64,000 nt of DNA, from contig NW_025765969.1 in the NCBI RefSeq assembly GCF_003918875.1, forward strand, positions 1,302,001 through 1,366,000, read 5' to 3'. The position numbers and the translations under genes are program-made. This stretch comes from Haliotis rubra. Its lineage: Eukaryota. Shown here piece by piece: positions 18,293-55,190 of the stretch (within the stretch, counting starts at the first letter, position 1; every line of letters begins with the position of its first letter). The notes below the pieces were generated by a model, which was given only the letters and a program-made list of their open reading frames with translations, was not told where the DNA came from and did not search any database.

Positions 18293-20296
18293 CTGTACTG
18301 TGGCACTGGGTGTGTCAACATGGCAAGTGACAAGATGGATGAACTCTGACAGTCATTTCATTTTTCACTTTCCCCATATACATTAATGCCAATCCAATTT
18401 GGCCAAATCAAGACTTAGCATTGATTAATCAAACCCAAGCCCCTCCATCTTATTACTTAACTGAGTGCATGTATCTGTAGTGCTGTTTGGTGCTTGAATT
18501 ATCTTACTTTAACTTGAAAATAGCACCAGAAAAATTACTCAAGTTACTCATAATGCATGCACGTTTAAAATATCTTTAGTGAATCTGAGCCTGTGTTGGA
18601 TCATTGACAGTATTTGCATCAAGAATATACAAGCTCAATTTGAAAAACGGGGGGAAGACCAAGGGAGACAACTCTTGTGGGGTTAAGACAACAGGAAGTC
18701 AATGTTGAAGCCATTTCGGATTGAGCGTGACAAAAGCTTTTGTTATCTTTCAGAGCACTGATGACAATAAATGCTGCCATTTGCCATCTCAATTCATTAA
18801 CAATAATGGATAGATACCAACAAGATACTGAACTGCCAATCTTTAGTGATAACACCCCTTTCAAGTTTCAGAAGCAATCTTGGTGCTAGCTAGTTGCAGA
18901 TAACTATGGTATTGAACTGAAAGAACTAATTGAAACCTTTCTGGCACAAAAAACCCTATTTCTTCAGTTGCACTAAAGATTTTCAGATACTTCCAATAAT
19001 GATGTACATAAATTAATATGTTCTGGTGGCCTATTTATCACCAGCAAATGAGAAAGGTACATTTAACTTCAAATTTCAATTCAAGGGCCCTCAAAGTACA
19101 TTTCACAACTATCACAATGAATAGATCTTGCACATTTTTAAAAGCTCTGTCTGCACAACTCAGGAAAATGTCCAAAGATTCTTGACTACATACCATGATC
19201 AAGCACAGTTCAGATATTATAGAACTGCTGGTCAGCATGAAAAGATTGTTTTAAAAGCACGCCTTCACAAAGAATATGCCAAAATGAAACTGGTACAAGG
19301 CAAAAAGTCAGTATAGGCTGGATCTTTGGGTTAATTTGTATCCCAAACTGTCTTGTATAGGATGAAAAGCATAAAATTTATTTAGAACTACTGTACCTTT
19401 ACATCTCATATATTCCAATTAAATATTATTGTATTTCACCTTTTCCTTGACCTTGGGGCCATCAACTGTTTGAATAGTCCTTACAGAAAGGTCCCATATA
19501 TTAATGTATATTAATGCAGAGCTCTTGATGGATCAGAAAATTTGCCTTAGCCTTCAAGTTAGAGGCAATTTTTCCTAACAAGTTGACATCCTTGACAAAT
19601 TTCTAGGCCTGGTTATACTTATTACAAGACCTTTTGTCGACTATGTGGAATGGAAAATGCATATCACTATTCGTTCATATAGGGGCTGCAATATATTTAG
19701 TCTGCATCTCTTATTGACAGTTGTGTAAACCAAATGGACATTTCTAAGAAAGAAATAATGGCTTTATTCTGACGCCAAACTACAAAATTATATTTTGATT
19801 CAGAAAGAAATATGGCCTGATTGTTTATCAGTGACGAAATTTAGCCACTCGTACAGTCTGAACATCCAGGGACAATCCACCTTTCATGTCAACTAGTTAT
19901 TTGTTTTAACTATTTTGTTGCTAACTGGGATTTCTTTCGAGTTTCAATGAGTCTTGTCAGTTACAAAAAACACAAAATTTGTCTCACTGTACTACCAAAC
20001 TGAATTACGATGTATATATTCCTAGACTGGAATTCAATAGAAATTAGCTGCTGAATCCAATAGCTGCCCCTGAGCAGGTCTAGATAACCCCCTGATGTTA
20101 CATAAAGAACATTACGACTTTATGTTAAAATGTGCAACACTTCCATAAATCTTCAAAGGACATACTTGTGCTTTTCAGATAAAGATTTTGCGAAACTACT
20201 TGAAATTTTACAGCATTAGTTTTTCGTTTTTTTAGCAGAATACATTTCATGAAGAAACCAGCAGTTCTGTGAGGATGTATTTCAAAAGATAATTAC

Positions 20297-21188
20297 CGTC
20301 ATTGCTGTAATCTGCTTCGTTATCATCGCCGTCGTCATTTTCATCTTGGAATACTAAAAAGTCATCTGCACTTTGGTCACCATATCTTGCTTGACTAGTA
20401 CTGGGTTCGGCGTAATCTGGCACATGTGGAACGTTTTGATAGAAGGACGATGATGAAGAACCGGGTGATTGAGAATGTGATGATTGTGGATGAGAGAGTC
20501 GATCTAAAGCTGCCTTGGACGTTTGCGTATGAGGTACATCGGATGAATAATCTATTTGCATGTATGGAGTCTCTTTCTTTGGCACAACATCATCAGGATC
20601 ATGGTCTGGTTCTATTTCTATTAAATCTGGATCTTCTGGTTCTTGTTTCACATTCACTGGAGTGTCATTTTTGGGTTTTGATTGATGAGAGTGATTTGAA
20701 GGACTTGAACTTATTTGAGAATGTGGACGACGATGAACAGGTGATCTGGGTCTTGGAGACTCAGAAAAAGAAGTCCTACTGCTTTTTGCAGCCGGCTGTG
20801 GCATAGACACAGAACTTTCATGCAGTCTTTTGGCAGGATGTGACAAATATACTGTTTGCTGCACCGTTTGTATTGTGGACATATTATTAGAATTGTAATT
20901 ATCATTGTCATTTTCTTGAGGCATTAATGTGCGGTCCACATCAAACACAGAGAGTTTTAAAGTCTTACATTCACTCTTTGATATCATGCTTGCATTTGAC
21001 GATACTCCGTCCACTTTGAACGTTAGTTTGTTTGAGCGTAACACAACCTGCACATTGGCATCTTGCGTTGTGCCGTATGAGTTCACTGAGGCCGGGAATT
21101 CAACATTGGAAGTCGGCCCCTTTTGAAGCGAGGAAAATACATTGCACAATTCCACAGGAATCGTGAACTCTAGTGTTTCAATAAACAT
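20297..21188 (-). CDS. Gene A constant exon: unknown N-terminal domain + S/P/acidic linker of a putative transcription factor
   Basis: Paralogous to 25676-26543 from MFIETLEF onward; similarity ends at the phase-1 donor G|gtaatt; VKQE SUMO-type motif. Confidence 0.85.
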
Positions 21189-21520
21189 GTTGATTATGCA
21201 GAGGACCACAACACAAATATCACAAACCGCTTGAATTATTCCGATTAATGAGCAGTCAGACGATCGGTATATCACCGGTGATGATAAAACCTCACGTTGT
21301 AGCTGGTCGCCATTGTTTGCCAGTTTCGAGCAGGTGCGCGTTCAGAAAAAAAACACTCTTCTTGACCTACCCACAAGCCTCAATTTGAACGACTGCAAAT
21401 GTACACATTAACAGTCTTTGATATCTATTAAATGTGCTGCAAGGAAACTCGGCGACGAAATGAGTTCTTTCACGTGGTAAACTTGGTTTGTAATCTTCTT
21501 CCTGGCCACATTCAAATTTC

Positions 21521-25675: not shown

Positions 25676-26543
25676 ATGTTCATCGAAACGCTTGAGTTTA
25701 CAATTCCTGTGGAATTGTGCAGTATTTTTTCAAGCCTCCAGAAGGGCCACAGGTCAAACGTTGAGTTTCCTGCATCAGTGAACTCTTATGGCACAACGCA
25801 AGATGCCAATTTGCAGGTTGTGTTACGCTCAAACAAACTAACGTTCAAAGTGGACGGTGTGTCGTCAAATGCAAGCATGATATCAAAGAGTGAATGTAAG
25901 ACTTTAAAACTCTCGGTGTTTGATGTGGACAGAACATTAATGCCTCAAGAAAATGACAGTTACGATTCTAATAATATGTCCGCAGTGCAGCATTCAACAC
26001 CTGTGTCATTTCCATCCAAAAGACATCATGAAATCTCAGTGTCACAGCCACCTGCTAAAAATCGTAGGACTTCTTTTTCTGATTCATCAAGACCCAGATC
26101 TCCACTTCATCGTCGCTCACAACCTCAATCCAGTCCACGTCCATCTATTAACACACAATCAAAATCCAAAAATGACTCTCTGGTGAATGTGAAACAAGAA
26201 CCAGAAGATCCAGATTTAATAGAAATAGAACCAGACCATGATCCTGATGATCTTGTGCCAAAGAAGGAGACTCCATACATGCAAATAGATTATTCATCCG
26301 ATGTACCTCATACGCAAACGTCCCAAGCAGCTCTAGATCGACTCTCTCATCCACAATCATCACATTCTCAATCACCCGGTTCTTCATCATCGTCCTTCCA
26401 TCAAAACGTTCCACATGTGCCAGATTACGCCGAACCCAGTACTAGTCAAGTTCATCATGGTGACCAAAGTGCAGATGACTTTTTAGTGTTTCAAGAACAA
26501 GACGAAGATTGTGATGACAACGATGCTGATTATGGAAATGATG
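25676..26543 (+). CDS. Gene B constant exon: unknown N-terminal domain + S/P/acidic linker
   Basis: 289 codons + 1 nt, phase-1 donor G|gtaatt at the same position as in gene A. Confidence 0.85.
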
Positions 26544-28644
26544 GTAATTATATTCTTCAGTTCTTCATCCTTCAGAAGCTGCTGGCCATGCTCACAACTT
26601 TCCAAAGTTTTGTATTTGAGTAGGCAAGATTAGGAAGGCAATTCATTATTTAATCAGGTCCTTGCTTTACTGAAAAACTAACCGTAAGAAACATTCTTTG
26701 TATGGGGAAACATTGCACAGTTATTTGGGCTGCAACAAACCATATTAAAGTCAAAATAAATGTTTAAGAGAGTTGACTAATGTCCTGCCTTGGTTAAATA
26801 TTTTTCATGTTGCATATCGTTCCTGCAGTATTGAAACAATCTCAAACTCAGAAGTTTTCCCCCCAAATCTGCAAAAGGTGTGTGTAGGCTGAATCTATAT
26901 TCTGAAATATGGAAATAAACTTAAACGGTACATTGTTATGAGCATTTGATAAACATATGGCATATTTTCCTTCACTGGTGAAGAGTTGATAGCAAAAACT
27001 GAGGGTTCAAAGTGGTGATTTGTAATTGAATTGAGAGTAATTTCTTATTCAATTAATAATGGAAATTATTACAAAAGCAAGTTGCCTTCCTAATGTTTTT
27101 ATAAAACAGATTCACAAAATTTCTAAAGGGTGACAAACACAAAATATCCAACATGACTACATATGGGTAAACATTTACCAAGCTGAGAGGCAGATTTAGA
27201 AACAATGGCAAACACTTTGAAAGTATCCTTGGTCATTCAGTTTATAAGAATGTAAAAAAAAAGAGATGTCTTGGTAGTCCTCCTGCTTCCATACATTCCC
27301 AGCATAGTTTTTGCAAATCGTAAAAATTAAGTTGCAGCAACTGATATTGCTTAATGATTCAGAGACATTTACATGTTTTTTCATTTTCACTGATCAAGAT
27401 AATAAGCTTTGCTTGTGGATGGGCCCAGGTTGTTTATCAAAATGGAATGGAGCTTTGATGCACTTAATTGTCAAGGATGTAATTTAAGGTGCTCAGCTCC
27501 TTTCCTGACTGTAAATCGCCACCTAAATTTTTGTGTAGTAAGTAGTTCAATATTGTAAGTGATTGAAATTAAAAATTGAAATTAATTCACAACACATTTT
27601 GTTCATGACCTCAATATTGCTGAAAAAAAGTTCCCAAATAGTATGTTTGAGATGACATTTTGAAAAATGCTGTCGAGGAAATTATGTTGTTGTGAAACAT
27701 CCCTCCAGATCTATCTTGTGATAAAATCGGTTGCCACACCGGGGTGTATTTTTGTTAACTTTGACGGTACATGTGCTGTGATTATTCCTGATGGATTTGG
27801 TTGCCCAGACAAGTTCTTAGCATTGCCAGCAGTTTGTTTTTGTACAAAGTTTGATCATGAACATTAATTGAGAACTTACAATTCTGTAACATTTTAATAC
27901 TGATAGGTGAACTTCTGAACCATAGTCGAAGATACATTTTTATTATTTGTTAAGTTAGGTGTCCCTGTTTATACTTCTCAAAGAAAGTCTAAGGATCAGC
28001 AGATTTTTATGTTGCTATAGTTACTGTCATGCTGTAATACCATCTATGCTGTTCATGACATGGAGTAATTATTGTAATGTGAAAGTATTGTGTTCCTTAA
28101 ATGATCTGGAGTAGTATTGATGGTGCACGTAAACATGAACAGTTGAAAAACACAATTTATACTCAGATAGATTTTTGTCTTTGTTACTTAATCTTTAAGT
28201 GTTGATTGGAACATCAGAAAGCTTGCATGATAGTTAAGTTAAAGGGTGTATTTGCATTTATTGTTTTGGCGTATTTCAAGTCTTTGTGTTCTCAACAAAT
28301 AGTGTTAATGATCCAGCTCTGTCAAAAACAGTTTCTTTAAAATGTTAAAATTAAATCACGTTTTGTGTGTAAAAGTAAATGTCAGTGTTGGTGCCTTGTT
28401 TTAATTTATGGTAATTGTTAAGCACCATTTTTAGTTATGTACACACATGCACTTATTTAGCAGGTGACAAGATAGATTGATAAACCTGGTGAGGTTTTTC
28501 ATTCTGTGAAATTAAAACTGGTTTTAGCTACATAAACTGTTAGAAGAGTCAAAAAGGGATGAGTGAAATTGCTCAGGAAAGAGTTTCCTCCCTTTAATCC
28601 ATCTTGTCACTTGCCATGTTGACACACCCAGTGCCACAGTACAG

Positions 28645-28677
28645 CGATGATGGGGGCGTGGTTCCTGGCATCACAAG
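28645..28677 (+). CDS. Gene B constant mini-exon (33 nt)
   Basis: AAG|GTAAGT donor at 28678; identical to the gene A mini-exon; acceptor choice inferred from frame. Confidence 0.7.
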
Positions 28678-29128
28678 GTAAGTCCACACACTGGATTCCT
28701 GACTCAACTGTGGCCTGGGGTAGGACGTCCTCAAGCTCAACAATGATAGACCAGGTCAAAACATTGGTAAAATACTGCAAAATAAGATTTTAGCCACGTA
28801 TGTACCATATTTGACACAGTATTAAATAATACAGGGTTTTATTTCATAATTATCTGAAGCTGCCATAATCTTGTTCATGCTCTGGTTCCCGTTGTATTTT
28901 ATTTTGGTATTTTGGACTTTTCAATTTTCTCCTGTTAGCAATATAATTGGCACAAAGTTTCTAAGAAAAATTTGAGAAGTATATGGATGAAATTGTTAGC
29001 TCAAGTCTTCACTGCCAACATGTACCCAGCCCATTTTATTCAGTCTATAAAATTTGATAATAAGCCTGGATTTGTGGTGAAATAGAACCCTTCAATATTA
29101 CATATAAACACACATGCATTGCTTTATG

Positions 29129-29134
29129 AATAAA
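29129..29134 (+). terminator. Putative poly(A) signal after the last constant donor of gene B
   Basis: aacacacatgca.tgctt...AATAAAgt.tgca conserved with gene A; T-rich downstream element. Confidence 0.55.
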
Positions 29135-30506
29135 GTCTGCACGGTTGGATGAATTTGGTTCTTTCTTCCCATGTACGTTATCTTGACTCAACCGAGGTAG
29201 TTGATTGGTCACCTTGGAATGTGGAAGATGGTAAGACCGTGAAAAGTTGTGGTTCTGATTAACTTTAAACTTGAATGTATTTTAAAACTTCAGTAACAAC
29301 TTTGAAATTGGCCTGTCGATATATTCTATAACCTGTTAATTTTATAAACAAGAAATAAAGATAAAATAAAATATTTTAAAAAGCCCAAAACCGCTGCAAG
29401 ATGGATCCAATTTAATCTGAACCACAACTCCTTGGCCTGAGTACACACAGTGGCACACATTCAACATTGTTTCTTCATGTGTTATGAATTCTGTGTCAAA
29501 CATGGTACAAGTGTCATGAAGTTGAGGATGAGAAAAAGTTATCTACCAAAGGTTGAAAAATAATGTGCCTCATCAAAGTACTGATTTGCTTGTGTAGATA
29601 AACATAATTCCTCCAGCTGTTAATTGCCCAAGTGTAAATGTAACTTAGTTTTATAGATTTCAAGTCTTCACTTATTTTGCATATTTTCCCATTACCTGAA
29701 AAACATTAAGGGCTATCAAACATGCACTAGCGAACAGATAGGAATGTTACTATGTCTCAGTGGCTAATATTGAATATTGTTGACCATATTTGACCAATTA
29801 TGTGTATGTAGTCTTTGTTTGGGGTATAAATAATGTTATCACATCTTTGAACTTGGAACATTGACATGTATCATCTCCAACTAAAGTGTGTTGATTTTGT
29901 TTGGGTAATATTGATGTATAAATGATCATTTAAGGCAGTGGATCATATTGTCTGAAAATATAGTTTTATACATAAGAGGTCAGATGTGGTTTTGTACGTA
30001 AGTGTTGTTGTCTAATACTTTTGATATATGATAATTTACTAATACTCTTGTGGATGAACTTGTTTTACTGCTTGTAAGATACATACACCCTATGTGTTTG
30101 ATACACACTTCAGTGAGATATGACTATATTTAGTGTAACCACATGTTGGGATTTTGCTATGGCGGACTTGATATCAATATTTCGTGATGAATGAAGAAAA
30201 CTACGAGTCTTTGTGAAAGTGATGTTTAATCAGGATCGAGACATGTTGACGACCGAGGGAATACTTTTTCTCTGAGAAATACTGACATTTGCCTTTATCC
30301 CATTTGAAGGACCTTGATCTTCAGATGAATATTTCAAGGAGTACTAGGCCCAGTTTGGACAAGATTCGATTGCTTGGTGTTCAGATCTGCGTTGCATAGT
30401 GCGATTGCAAATGAAACAGTTTGATGTAATATGACCATTCACTTGGCCAACAATTATAGGCATGATCACGTGATATCAAGAACCAGGGACACTGAATGAT
30501 AATCAC

Positions 30507-30790
30507 CAGGGTTTTACGTGTCACTCAAATCTGCGTCCAGTACGCACAAATGTGGAGAATGGACGCAGAAACCCCCAAATACTGCATCCAAAGAGACGCA
30601 CAAAAATACCTACTGTGACTCAGGAGTAGTTACCTCTGTCTAATTTCATCCATCAGTCATGAGCACTGACCACATGACCAGGGATTCATTCATTATCTGA
30701 ACGTACACTACACCATATCAATACTTGACAGGATCCTCCTACTGCCAGCAAGGACCTATAACATTTATTGTAAGACACGGTAAAACCCTG
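30507..30790. mobile_element. MITE
   Basis: TIRs cagggttttacgtgtc / gacacggtaaaaccctg. Confidence 0.6.
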
Positions 30791-31153
30791 ATCAAGTAAT
30801 GTCCAATAATAAACCAGCTTTCAATAGCATCAGGCTGTATGAAACAGCCTGTGATTGTTTCACATTCATACCTTCGATTGGATCATGTGGATCAAAGAAG
30901 ATTACATACCAGTTTAGCGGTTCATCTTTCAGTTAAAAAGAACTCTGTCTAAGGATTATGATTGCTTTGTTGAGTTGAGATTGACGTTTTAGCCAGATAG
31001 CTTGCCCAAAGAGACGGCATTGTTTCAGTTTTTCGTGATGTTGTTGAGATCTGTGATGTGGAAAGGAAACTTTGCCGATACTCTACCGATATGCCTGCTT
31101 CTTTGCCTGATGTATACTTTAACACTGACAATGGCTTTTCCATTGTTCTTCAG

Positions 31154-31470
31154 TTGCTGGCCATAGTTTCAAATACCACAGCTTTATGTTGAAGAGACTG
31201 TGTCGAATATGTGGGAAGCTAGCGGACGGTGGCCCTAAGAAAATAAAATTCCAGCAAGAGCTGCTGGAATTGTTCCATGTCAACGTTTTTGCCGATGTCC
31301 CAGGTGTACATCCAGTGAAAATTTGTCTAGCCCACAAACAAGTTCTGAATCGCTTCAAGCGAGCAAAGGTGTCAGGGAGGCCGTACAGCACCCATGCTGT
31401 TCCCCTTGAGTTTGCTCCCTATGACGAAATCCACTCAGACTGTTTTATATGCTTTCCCTTTTGTGGATGA
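31154..31470 (+). CDS. Gene B variable exon B0: RAG1 N-terminal/Chapaev-like zinc-binding domain
   Basis: Acceptor ccattgttcttcag, phase 1 and in frame; H-x3-LKRLCRICG...F-x-VNV-x2-D-x3-VHP-x2-IC...CFIC matches the RAG1 N-terminal motif pattern as I recall it. Confidence 0.7.
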
Positions 31471-32524
31471 CTGAGATTATGAGATTTTGAGATTATTCAT
31501 GAACTGGTTAACCATCATTGGCTGTTTGTGTTGTGATGCTGGTGGTGGACTGAATCGGCTGACGATCGTGAAATACGAACATAAATGCAACAGCTGTTGC
31601 CCAGATCTTGAGTTGAGGAGCTCTGAACTTGGCTTTCTGAACCCACTTTCTGAACACTGGGTTAGCTTAGTGGTTAAAGTGTTTGCTCTGCATCCGAGGA
31701 CCAGAGTTTGATTTCAAAAAATGCTTACAGTGTGTAAAGCCAATTTGTGGCATATGTTGGTGTTGCTGGAATATTGCTGATAGATGATGATATTCATGGC
31801 TTGGGTTTGTTAAAGGCTTGAGGGACACATGACCTATATCTTAACTATCCTACTGATAAATATATATATACAGAATAGAAAACATTCAAATAATAAAATA
31901 CCTATGTACAAAGTTCTACCTGCCACAAAATCACTCAGTGTTTTGCTTTGGACAAATGTCTGATACCATGTGCAGCTGTTGTGATATTTCCTCTGATCTA
32001 TTGATCTGTTGTTGCTGGAATATTGCCGTTAAACCAAAAACTTGAGCATGCACTAGTTGCCTGGATCTGTTGTAGCTCTTGAGCATGCACTAGTTGCCTG
32101 GATATGTGCGCTATATAAATATCCTATAATAATAATAATAATATTTCCTCTGATCTATTGATCTGTTGTACATGTTCCAGTGCTACATTTTGTCAACAAC
32201 TTTTTTAACTTTATAAAATTTTCACTGCCAATGATATGGGAGATGAGTTGTCCAGATATGGTGAAAATTGAGATGAGAATCATTAGGTCAGTAAAAGTCG
32301 CGTCAAATATCGCCAGCCATTGCCTAGTTTATAGAAGTTGATTTCCGACTCTTGTGGTTGCGATCATGAGTCGTAGTGCCAGTAGTACTCGTAGAATAAT
32401 GCAGTATTCAACTTGATCTCCCAGAACCAGAGTGCATTGTTTTCCAATCATCAAGACCTTGTCCATTCATTTGCACCAAAGTGACCAGATATATTGGTAC
32501 ATGTAGGCTTTTTATTGCTTTCAG

Positions 32525-38575: not shown

Positions 38576-40492
38576 CCTTGGATGGACAGTGTGCGAAATT
38601 TACGCTGGTCCTGTGGTCCCTGGCTAGTAAAAATGCATCAGGACCACTAAAGTTTGCAGTGGACCTTGTGGCCAGTGAATTTTGTATTGATAGTTCAGTA
38701 AATCTACGAATGTTATTTTGGACCAGTGAAGTACAGACAGGACCACCAATTATTGTCCACTCACTGGTCCTGTGGTCTTGCGGGAAATGTTGAAAGGTTT
38801 CTTTCCCTGATGGAGTGTTTTGTTGCTGCTTGTCTCAGCAATATTCCTTAATGTCATCACAGCAGCTGATAAACGATTGAATCTGGAAAAAACAATACAG
38901 TGAAAAATATCACGGTCAAGGATCCATGCCATTGGGGTGCGATAGGCTGTCGACAATAACTTTACCTGATCAACATATTCATTTAGTCATCTCTAAGGTG
39001 CAGGTTGCTGGGGGGCCAATTTAAATCTGGAATTCCCTTGAGTTAAATTGCTGATCTGAGACAAATCACTGCCAAAGTTTGTGTCAAAACTTTTATTAGT
39101 TTCTCAGTCTGTACCAAAAACGTTTGAGAAAACTACCCTGAGCATTGCTCTTAGCCCCATTTTCAGTAGAACTTCTGACTTTTAGGGCTATTAATGGCAG
39201 TGCTAACTCGTCCGAAAATATTTTGCTCAATTTGGACTTTGGATCAGCGGTCAAAGCCACACACTGTTGTCAGCTTGCTGCTTTTGATGCTTAGCAATTG
39301 ATGTGATGAAATGTCGCTGTGAAGGAGGAAGAGTGCATAGGAGGTTGTTATGAAGCTCCTTCAACAAAATACCCATCTCCAAGGCGTCCAAGGGTGGTGT
39401 TGCTGGTTTCATAATTTTGTTTTTGTTGCTGATCCTATTCAAAATGGGAGAAATGATTCATGCATTCATAATACATTGTTGTGTAGTTTATGCAGGAATC
39501 TTGTACTAAAGCGGGACTTTCAGCCAGACACTGCATGTGTTGTTTGAATGTTTTCGGTCAAGATCTTCTGTGATGAAGTCTTAGATTTTATGAAGTCTTA
39601 GATTTTCTTGTGACCAGGGTAACTGTGGTAGTTAATGAAGTGTATCCCCTACCTTGTGTTTCTCTCTTGGTTATCTCTGGTGCTGTGTGTCCATGTGTTC
39701 TTAGATATTTTCGTCTCAAGTAATTACAATGTTTCAGGGTTTCACATGAGTCATGTATGTTGGACCCAATAGAAGTCTGTTTCAGATGTTCCGCATGATT
39801 TCATCATGAAGTGTTTTAAGCGACATAATGTTTGTGATATCGTCATGGTTACCAATGTCAATATAATCAAATCATGCATTTCTCTGTAAAATAATTATCA
39901 TTGAGTCATGATTTCTAACTATTTCACACAAAAGAAGGTAAAATCCTCAGGTTGTTATGCCATCACCATGTTTGCCCCGGCAAGGTTGCATTTGAAAATA
40001 AAGATGTCGGTATATATTTGTGTTGGTCATACTTTTATTTTTTTATGTACCTATAACGTTATAACAATAAATAATTTCATATCAAAATTTGCCAAATCGG
40101 TATCTGCAGTCTTACATGTGCTGCTCATTTGATGGGTGGATGAAGTTATACGATTCTTTGAAGACAGCCCGATTTTGGACTGTTGTCCAGTCAAAACTGA
40201 ACTTTCCACTCCTTCTGCAGGCATTAGCTATGTCACAGTTGAGTCAGAGACAGTTCTGCTGATTGCTGCAACAATGTGGATGTCTGGCCTGATGTAGAAC
40301 AAAAATATGCAAGAGTACATAATCCTATATGCTTAGGCATGTAAAGAGTTAAAAACAATCCCGTTAAAAAGAAATGAATTGTACAGTCTGAACGTAATTA
40401 CGTGAAAACAAATTGTTTGAGAAATATTTTATCATGCCTTTAAGAAACAAAAGAATATTCTGATGGACTCTTGCATATTTCTGCTGTTTCAG

Positions 40493-41340
40493 GCTGTCAG
40501 GTACACTTTGACACAACGTCAGGTGACCTCCAAACCCACCAATCAGCAACTGTGTTTGATACATCAGGTGACCTATCAACAGGCACGTTACAAAGACAAA
40601 TGACCGTGTTTGAGCCTAAGAAAAGGAAACTGACTGTGAAATCCTTAGAAACAAAGTTCTTAGCCCTGTTGGAGGTGGAGAAGGGACAGCAATCCAAGGC
40701 CCAAATAGCCAGGGAGTTTGGAGTTCCCCCGAACACACTGTCCACGTGGTTAAAACAGGCTGATAGAATCAAAACCGCTTATTTAGAATGCAGCTTCAAC
40801 CCAACTCGTAAACGTCTCCGAAGCGTCCAGTATGAAGATGTTGATGATGCTACTTTACAGTGGTATAGAAATGCTATCATGAATGACTTTCCAGTGTCTG
40901 GTCGTATCCTCTTGGCCAAGACCCAGGAGATTGCTCTACAACGAGGTCATGTAGATTTCAAGGCTTCTCTGGGTTGGTTGGAAAGGTTTAAGTGTAGACA
41001 CGGCATCACTTTTGGGAAGGGGAAGGGAAGACACAAACAGTTCAAATCCATGATTGATGAATATGGGCCAGTGGATTACACAGTTTCGGAAAATAGACAT
41101 GATAATGTTGGAGTGGAGGCGAAAGATGGCGCTGAAGCTGTTGATTACACGAAAGTCGAGACAAATCCAGGTCGTGAAGGTCGTGCAGTGTGTGAAGGAA
41201 ACACAGATGATGATGTTGTAGACTACACCATGTCTGAAACTAAGCTTGATGAGCATGACAATTCGTCAGAAGCTAAACTTTGTAGTCAAGATGGTGAACT
41301 GTTTTCGGATACTAAATATTCAAGTCAGGATGGTGATTGA
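40493..41340 (+). CDS. Gene B variable exon B7: pogo/Tigger/CENP-B-type double HTH, no DDE domain
   Basis: Acceptor ttctgctgtttcag, phase 1; IAREFGVPPNTLSTWLK and FKASLGWLERFKCRHGI motifs; acidic tail then stop. Confidence 0.85.
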
Positions 41341-54840: not shown

Positions 54841-55190
54841 GTCTTAGAATGGACCCAGTCATGGATAGTTCTGGCATGTATCACCCTAGTTCTCATGGCA
54901 TTACGGGCAGTTTGGGACCACGTTTGTCACTGATGCAAGGCACTCTTTCGATTCCGGGAAGTAAAGATTCTAACATGGCCCCCAAACCCACCTGGGCGTG
55001 TGAAGTTTGTGGGAAAATCTTCCAGACCCAGCAGAACAGAACTCTGCATGTCGAGGCATTGCATGATAATTTGACCTACCCATGTCCTTGTGGAAGAGTC
55101 TATAGTTACATCAAGAATTTGAACAGGCATCAGAAGTCCTGTTCTTTGTTTCAAGCATTTTATCAATCTGATCTTGAAAAGAAATCTTGA
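54841..55190 (+). CDS. Gene B variable terminal exon B15, zinc-finger pair
   Basis: Acceptor tttttgttgctttcag, phase 1. Confidence 0.85.

Follow-up and report, generated by a model that had tools for sequence, protein, structure and literature searches.

A predicted RAG1 NZD/Chapa-type zinc domain encoded by an alternative last exon of a lola-like gene in the abalone Haliotis rubra

In a window of 64,000 nucleotides of the blacklip abalone Haliotis rubra (assembly GCF_003918875.1, contig NW_025765969.1, positions 1,302,001 to 1,366,000 of the forward strand; coordinates below are those of the window unless a contig is named), the gene that we call gene B (LOC124275018) contains, as the first of its variable exons, a short coding exon whose product is assigned, by sequence and by predicted fold, to the family formed by the N-terminal zinc domain of RAG1 (NZD) and the Chapa domain of Chapaev transposases. 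This exon, hereafter the NZD exon, is under purifying selection. Taken as a whole, the results lead us to favor, with moderate confidence, the reading that it is a functional alternative last exon, captured once from a transposase and kept in three paralogues (gene B and two genes that we call the 738-kb and 501-kb paralogues after the positions of their constant exons), which would provide a tail targeting nucleic acid or chromatin. The features on which the analysis is centered are the following.

25676..26543, plus strand: constant coding exon of gene B, from the ATG to the shared phase-1 donor (G/GTAATT)
31125..31153, plus strand: branch-point-like CTGAC, pyrimidine tract and AG acceptor of the NZD exon
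31154..31467, plus strand: coding part of the alternative last exon, a predicted double zinc finger of the NZD/Chapa type (104 codons after a split Val codon)
31468..31470, plus strand: TGA stop codon of the NZD exon, in the identical place in H. rufescens
31471..31897, plus strand: probable 3' untranslated region (UTR) of the NZD exon, with the sole canonical AATAAA at 31892

The AG acceptor of the NZD exon is located at 31152-53 and its first base at 31154. The last base of the constant exon (G, 26543) and the first two bases of the NZD exon (TT, 31154-55) make up a Val codon split in phase 1, as in the finger exons of the gene, and the frame is open up to the TGA at 31468-70. This confirms the in-frame phase-1 exon and the peptide described in an earlier reading made from the letters of the window alone (the sequence-only reading). 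The donor at 28677 assumed in that reading was instead rejected, since the annotated isoforms and the RNA contigs use 26543. In particular, the junction is 26543>31154 because the RefSeq isoform X29 of the H. rufescens orthologue (LOC124128726; 394 amino acids) joins the constant exon directly to the NZD exon (...DADYGND/VAGHSFKYH...) and stops at the same place. For the 501-kb paralogue, the same in-frame join is present in the RefSeq models of H. asinina (XP_067669401) and H. rufescens (LOC124128061 X9). RNA-type contigs obtained from four sequencing runs (three of H. rubra and one of a second organism) cover the constant exon and end at 26543-26545, and the loose end of one H. rubra contig runs from 26543 into the finger exon located at 54841. 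Between 26543 and 31154, neither a finger exon nor any other tail was found to map: the NZD exon is the first variable exon of gene B, the position that had been proposed for it.

Gene B is lola-like, that is, it has a single constant 5' exon, to which any one of dozens of mutually exclusive terminal exons can be joined. The window comprises two paralogous genes, A and B, arranged head-to-head, with the constant exon of gene A at 20247-21275 on the minus strand and that of gene B starting at 25676 on the plus strand. After each of them come dozens of short open reading frames (ORFs) that terminate in a C2H2+C2HC finger pair. The 315-amino-acid ORF at 25676-26623 is 100% identical to isoform X4 of LOC124275018 in the H. 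rubra RefSeq annotation. In the RefSeq annotations of H. rufescens, H. asinina, H. rubra, and H. cracherodii, each gene has up to 35-46 isoforms, which differ in their tails alone, and most isoforms of gene B terminate in the C2H2+C2HC pair. As in lola and mod(mdg4) of Drosophila, a shared donor at the end of one constant 5' part serves many exclusive terminal exons that encode small zinc-finger modules. However, different from those loci, the constant part of gene B has no BTB domain; no Pfam family matched the 315-amino-acid ORF, and the ESM Atlas gave no lead above chance for it. The N-terminal 95 residues or so of the constant exon (25676-25975, plus strand) are conserved, with an omega of 0.11, and occupy the position that the BTB domain has in lola. 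A second transposase-type tail, of the pogo type, is encoded at 40471-41340 on the plus strand, where CENP-B_N (E value of 3e-8) and HTH_Tnp_Tc5 (E value of 7e-14) were matched, and this exon is annotated in isoforms of H. rubra, H. asinina, and H. rufescens.

A RAG1 N-terminal or Chapaev-like zinc domain had been suggested for the NZD exon in the sequence-only reading, and profile searches agree with this assignment. The Pfam family RAG1_imp_bd (PF12560) matches the exon with an E value of 1e-4 (22.4 bits), the H. rufescens orthologue X29 carries a precomputed match to the same family, and the best match among all PDB sequences is 21wb, the mouse RAG1 NZD (a 137-residue fragment; E value of 2e-4), which aligns in two blocks, namely H-x7-CRICG and the HP...C motif through the final C-x2-C. 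At the sequence level, this likeness to RAG1 is well beyond chance. A HMMER pass over 1.84 billion representative proteins (E value up to 1e-3) found 73 relatives of the NZD exon. Word-index searches with the exon and with residues 291-394 of the H. rufescens isoform X29 matched X29 alone, which we ascribe to the limits of such an index. Nine long relatives (about 900 to 1250 amino acids) were scanned; RAG1_imp_bd occurs in eight of them, in six above the Pfam cut-off, and most also contain DUF6589. Moreover, the comparison of language-model features with those of RAG1_imp_bd clusters gave values of 0.93-0.94.

The mouse NZD is made of two interdigitated zinc modules, ZFa, with C110, C113, C175, and C178 as ligands, and ZFb, with H102, H206, C210, and C213 (10.64898/2026.01.24.700457). 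The corresponding residues predicted in the abalone domain are listed here with their codons.

ZFa, ligand equivalents: C16 (31201-03), C19 (31210-12), C57 (31324-26), H60 (31333-35)
ZFb, ligand candidates: H8 (31177-79), H3 (31162-64), H93 (31432-34), C96 (31441-43), C99 (31450-52)

In a family alignment of 56 domains, C16, R17, C57, and C96 are invariant and H8, L12, C19, and P53 are at least 90% conserved. All four ligand positions of ZFa are present, with position 60 being either Cys or His across the family. As for ZFb, H8, C96, and C99 are present. The His of the family motif F-x-P-H varies among the paralogues: gene B has it at a displaced position (H93), the 738-kb paralogue has a shifted His, and the 501-kb paralogue lacks it. 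A further His near the N terminus (H3) is common to all three abalone copies, and with it ZFb could have a ligand set of two plus two.

The AlphaFold2 model (zinc-free, built from the 56-domain alignment; pLDDT of 94.2, pTM of 0.84) predicts helices at residues 5-12, 29-40, and 58-73, which correspond to H1, H3, and H4 of the mouse domain and are arranged in the two interlocked modules that define the RAG1 NZD fold. In the ESM Atlas, the model matches predicted vertebrate RAG1 N termini with TM scores of 0.71-0.81 over 91-96 residues. Among solved structures (the Foldseek PDB library and a wider one), the search returned only ZADs, over residues 14-76 (Z of 5.3), and no NZD entry. This partial ZAD match agrees with the same observation for the mouse NZD, whose ZFa resembles a ZAD; in the same preprint, the Chapa domains of invertebrate RAG1L and Chapaev are described as lacking helix H2 (10.64898/2026.01.24.700457).

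The comparison with mouse RAG1 thus rests on the ordered blocks H-x7-C-R-x-C-G, HP-x3-C-x2-C/H, and C-x2-C, on the correspondence of the predicted helices, and on the basic character of both domains. Different from the mouse NZD, the abalone domain has neither helix H2 nor the basic loop, as is the case in invertebrate RAG1L and Chapa domains, one Cys of ZFa is replaced by His, and the C-terminal His of ZFb is shifted. Furthermore, different from RAG1, it stands at the C terminus of a non-recombinase protein that has no RING, NBD, or catalytic core. The likeness to the ZAD (zf-AD, of insect C2H2 proteins) concerns the fold of the first zinc module (Z of 5.3, 61 residues, rmsd of 2.2) and is partial: ZADs bind a single zinc, dimerize, and are N-terminal, whereas the abalone domain is C-terminal, has a second predicted zinc site formed by its N- and C-terminal extensions, and, as a profile comparison suggested in the sequence-only reading showed, gives no zf-AD Pfam match at E values up to 1.

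For the analysis of conservation, the window was compared with the orthologous region of H. rufescens, which can be aligned to it only in blocks. The NZD exon is 93.1% identical between the two species, with no indels, the last 100 intron bases before it are 85% identical, and identity falls to 55-72%, with many gaps, in the farther flanks; in the 3' UTR, the alignment persists to about 31590, and the AATAAA at 31892 lies beyond the conserved part. The dN/dS ratio, which had been named in the sequence-only reading as a way of examining its proposal, was estimated by the Nei-Gojobori method: with dN of 0.055, dS of 0.145, and omega of 0.38, the NZD exon is under purifying selection. The 16 collinear finger exons show dN of 0.02-0.16, dS of 0.36-1.09, and omega of 0.03-0.33, and the constant exon has an omega of 0.175. 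The amino acid constraint on the NZD exon is like that on the neighboring finger exons, and its omega is higher because its dS is unusually low, 2.5-7 times below the values of the 16 finger exons. Over 31125-31252, which comprises the acceptor block and the initial 99 bases of the exon, there is 1 difference from H. rufescens, and there are 21 in the remaining 218 bases (Fisher P value of 0.003). It is possible to hypothesize that a constraint at the RNA level, related to splice choice, may lie behind the conserved 5' part and the low dS, besides the constraint on the protein.

Only three close copies of the NZD exon are present in the 1.38-Gb assembly, namely, the one described here and those at C1079:745514 (54% identical) and C1079:489726 (45% identical). 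All of them are located on one contig (C1079, the contig of the window). Each follows the constant exon of one of the paralogous genes (for the other two copies, at 738481 on the plus strand and at 501201 on the minus strand) and is the first variable exon of its gene; in both paralogues, the examined DNA, which excludes about 3 kb beside the 501-kb constant exon, showed no finger ORF separating the NZD exon from the constant one. The 29-base block made of CTGAC, pyrimidine tract, and AG, together with the first 20 exon bases or so, hardly varies between gene B, its H. rufescens orthologue, and the two other H. rubra paralogues, and the NZD exons of the three H. rubra paralogues are only 45-54% identical as protein. 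The dispersed near-identical copies that, according to the sequence-only reading, would have betrayed a transposon fragment are therefore absent, and three diverged syntenic paralogues are found in their place. A tblastn search of the window with the nine long relatives gave matches confined to 31153-31467 and nothing else transposase-like, and no RING or transposase core was found after the NZD exon, as had already been noticed in that reading. Thus, neither of the marks of a mobile element, an adjoining transposase core and dispersed similar copies, accompanies the exon. A decaying transposon copy was rejected on the grounds of the absence of stops and indels, the conservation of the exon, the three syntenic diverged paralogues, and the lack of transposase remains nearby. 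The NZD exon is missing from 7 of the 10 paralogues found, gene A among them; in these seven, the NZD exon was either lost or never present. The constant exon of gene A is 83% identical to that of gene B.

When 59 domains were placed in a maximum-likelihood tree, the six host exons grouped together in a single clade (support of 99/98), within which the orthologue groups of gene B (100/99) and of the 501-kb gene (100/99) are recovered, and this clade is placed among transposase-type N termini. A single clade with nested orthologue groups points to one capture, followed by gene duplication and then by speciation. With these data, domain identity, conservation, paralogy, and the splicing annotated in the sister species are established.

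As regards the source of the domain, the nearest relatives outside the Haliotis host genes are protein P0122 and its cluster-mate P0200 (E value of 7e-23). P0200 (971 amino acids) presents two NZDs followed by a DUF6589 region, with both RAG1_imp_bd and DUF6589 just under the cut-offs. Further long relatives belong to an annelid and to amphioxus. The H. rubra genome itself also contains an NZD-bearing element in decayed copies (C2582:368495, C2090:1795608 and 1800268, and C2280:312273); the ORF of this element begins with a canonical NZD (F-H-P-H...C-x2-C) and continues with a transposase-like region resembling that of P0200-type proteins. One of the copies is cut by a long terminal repeat (LTR) element, and the copy on C2582 is frameshifted, with LTR-retroelement ORFs after it. 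The Chapa domain was named by Kapitonov and Koonin, who reported it in Chapaev, Chapaev3, TransibSU, and RAG1 (PMC4411706), and N-RAG-TP of Aplysia represents the case known from a mollusc (PMC8355894). The abalone exon shares with these transposases the form of the domain without H2, and its closest outside relatives are the N termini of proteins of about 1000 amino acids with DUF6589. Different from them, it lies outside any mobile element, with three syntenic host copies under selection. We infer a Chapaev-like source, and the usual home of the domain, together with the decayed elements resident in the genome, suggests that the transfer went from transposon to host. Hence, in the proposal of a transposon-derived module domesticated as an exchangeable C terminus, with which the sequence-only reading had concluded, exchangeability and selection are borne out by the RefSeq joins and by the omega value, and the transposon origin is retained as a suggestion.

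Two further observations concern the distribution of the fold. Echinoderm proteins of about 850 amino acids with domains of the P-element/THAP9 type (TNP-like RNaseH_N, GBD) reach a TM score of 0.79 over 94 residues to the NZD model, and the NZD fold may therefore head a second transposase superfamily, at the usual position of THAP. P0125, P0130, P0132, and P0134, which are Asn/Gln-rich, have two NZD-like domains, and come from uncharacterized ENA/Logan contigs, form a separate well-supported clade for which no transposase family match was found; they may represent another nontransposase use of the NZD fold.

The history and the role that we propose can be outlined as follows. The module would have been taken from a transposase of the Chapaev/N-RAG-TP type, in a single capture preceding both the duplication of the gene family and the split of H. 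asinina, H. rubra, and H. rufescens, and it would have been retained as the first variable exon of three paralogues. There, the NZD tail would act as an alternative nucleic-acid- or chromatin-targeting tail, redirecting the common N-terminal part to different targets. Such a role is suggested by the context of the array and by the vertebrate homologue. Every other tail in the gene B array is a small DNA-binding module, either a finger pair or, in one exon, a pogo-type helix-turn-helix (HTH). The NZD tail is basic (pI of 9.3, with 15 Lys/Arg versus 8 Asp/Glu), and five Lys/Arg residues are found on predicted helix 58-73, the equivalent of H4, where an electropositive patch distinguishes the mouse NZD from the ZAD (10.64898/2026.01.24.700457). 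Furthermore, residues 87-217 of mouse RAG1 bind double-stranded DNA with a Kd of 0.8-3 uM, in a zinc-dependent manner and with no sequence preference in SELEX (PMC3124419). On this basis, we tentatively put forward a bolder hypothesis, which may well not hold: the abalone exons could be a natural domain swap, in which the NZD/Chapa fold would target DNA autonomously and could be exchanged for C2H2 pairs or the pogo HTH.

Several points weigh against the proposed reading. The score of the H. rubra exon is 0.9 bit below the Pfam gathering cut-off of 23.3, and the canonical His of the second zinc site, found in F-x-P-H in the family, is displaced or missing in the abalone copies. The DNA binding of the mouse NZD is weak and not sequence specific (PMC3124419). 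The sister group of the host clade is not fixed by the 59-domain tree. As for expression, the evidence for splicing consists of RefSeq models of sister species. In the region 26000-31600, the RNA contigs of the four runs leave the NZD exon and its junction uncovered, which is no proof of silence since contigs drop rare forms, and the sequencing-run search recorded no RNA run as containing the exon. That the NZD exon is expressed in H. rubra is what we infer.

The main rival, which we regard as rather unlikely, is a functional exon whose product has a ZAD-like role in protein interaction or dimerization, giving rise to an isoform without a DNA-binding tail that would titrate or bridge the finger isoforms. 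Among solved folds, the model matches only ZAD dimerization domains (Z of 5.3-3.5, residues 14-76), weak zf-AD Pfam matches occur in relatives of the NZD, and ZFa is regarded as ZAD-like (10.64898/2026.01.24.700457). However, the same preprint reports the mouse NZD to be monomeric in size exclusion chromatography (SEC) and its basic patch on H4 to be unlike the ZAD (10.64898/2026.01.24.700457); the abalone helix is equally basic, and the exon has no zf-AD match. A homodimer structure prediction of the NZD tail gave scores of 0.00 and counts neither way.

It is improbable, in our opinion, that the domain was born in host genes and only later acquired by transposases (Chapaev, RAG1L), so that the abalone exon would not be transposon derived. 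This scenario is compatible with a tree that does not fix the sister group of the host clade, with the existence of other nontransposase NZD-like proteins (the P0130/P0132 family and small clusters of 115-138 amino acids), and with the ZAD-like host ancestor of the fold proposed in the preprint (10.64898/2026.01.24.700457). Nevertheless, the host form was observed only in Haliotis, whereas the transposase-linked form occurs in an annelid, amphioxus, and other animals; moreover, the same array captured a pogo HTH, and the same genome contains decayed NZD-bearing elements. Finally, a decaying fragment or an annotation artifact that was never translated would fit the absence of RNA coverage in the four runs examined and of isoforms with the NZD exon among the H. 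rubra protein matches seen, but it is highly improbable in view of an exon free of stops and indels and 93% identical between near-unalignable flanks, of three syntenic paralogues that are 45-54% identical and have a conserved acceptor, of isoforms annotated in two other species, and of the lack of transposase remains nearby.

The captured, alternatively spliced exon that we favor combines elements that are already known, namely, the domain itself, the capture of transposase domains by alternative splicing, and arrays of exchangeable finger exons. Host-transposase fusion genes that arose through exon capture and alternative splicing have been described by Cosby et al. (bioRxiv 10.1101/2020.05.07.082677). 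In those fusions and in the abalone gene alike, host exons are spliced to a transposase-type domain that has its own acceptor and is maintained by selection; the two features that characterize them, an in-frame splice to host exons and purifying selection, are found here in the RefSeq models and in the omega of 0.38. Different from the abalone case, the fusions of Cosby et al. are from vertebrates and involve other types of domain, whereas here the host is a mollusc, the domain is of the NZD/Chapa type, and it is one choice among dozens. In the searched literature, the Chapa domain is mentioned in two papers, neither of which describes a host-gene fusion, and this is, to our knowledge, the first host-transposase fusion with an NZD/Chapa domain. 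It also adds a mollusc to the examples of transposase-domain capture by alternative splicing, hitherto documented mainly in vertebrates.

The physiological role of the RAG1 NZD has been stated to be undefined, and, outside RAG1 and RAG1L, only Chapaev transposases are reported to retain the domain consistently (10.64898/2026.01.24.700457). In abalone, selection maintains the predicted RAG1 NZD fold as part of an ordinary host gene, where it is trimmed to the domain alone and stands in a slot otherwise occupied by small DNA-binding modules; by analogy with these modules, this would be an independent functional hint that the NZD targets nucleic acid or chromatin. The exon also offers a natural construct of 104 residues for biochemistry. 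If the natural domain swap hypothesized above were true, it would provide a tractable stand-alone system for the original role of the N-terminal zinc domain of RAG1 and transposons, such as the recognition of specific DNA, transposon ends included. How V(D)J recombination itself originated is not touched by these observations.

Just 3' of the NZD exon, at 31658-31778, there is a dispersed repeat with a tRNA-like start, further copies of which occur at the H. rufescens locus (80933 and 88395). The hits of unrelated organisms in the sequencing-run search (a share of 0.05) are probably explained by this repeat.
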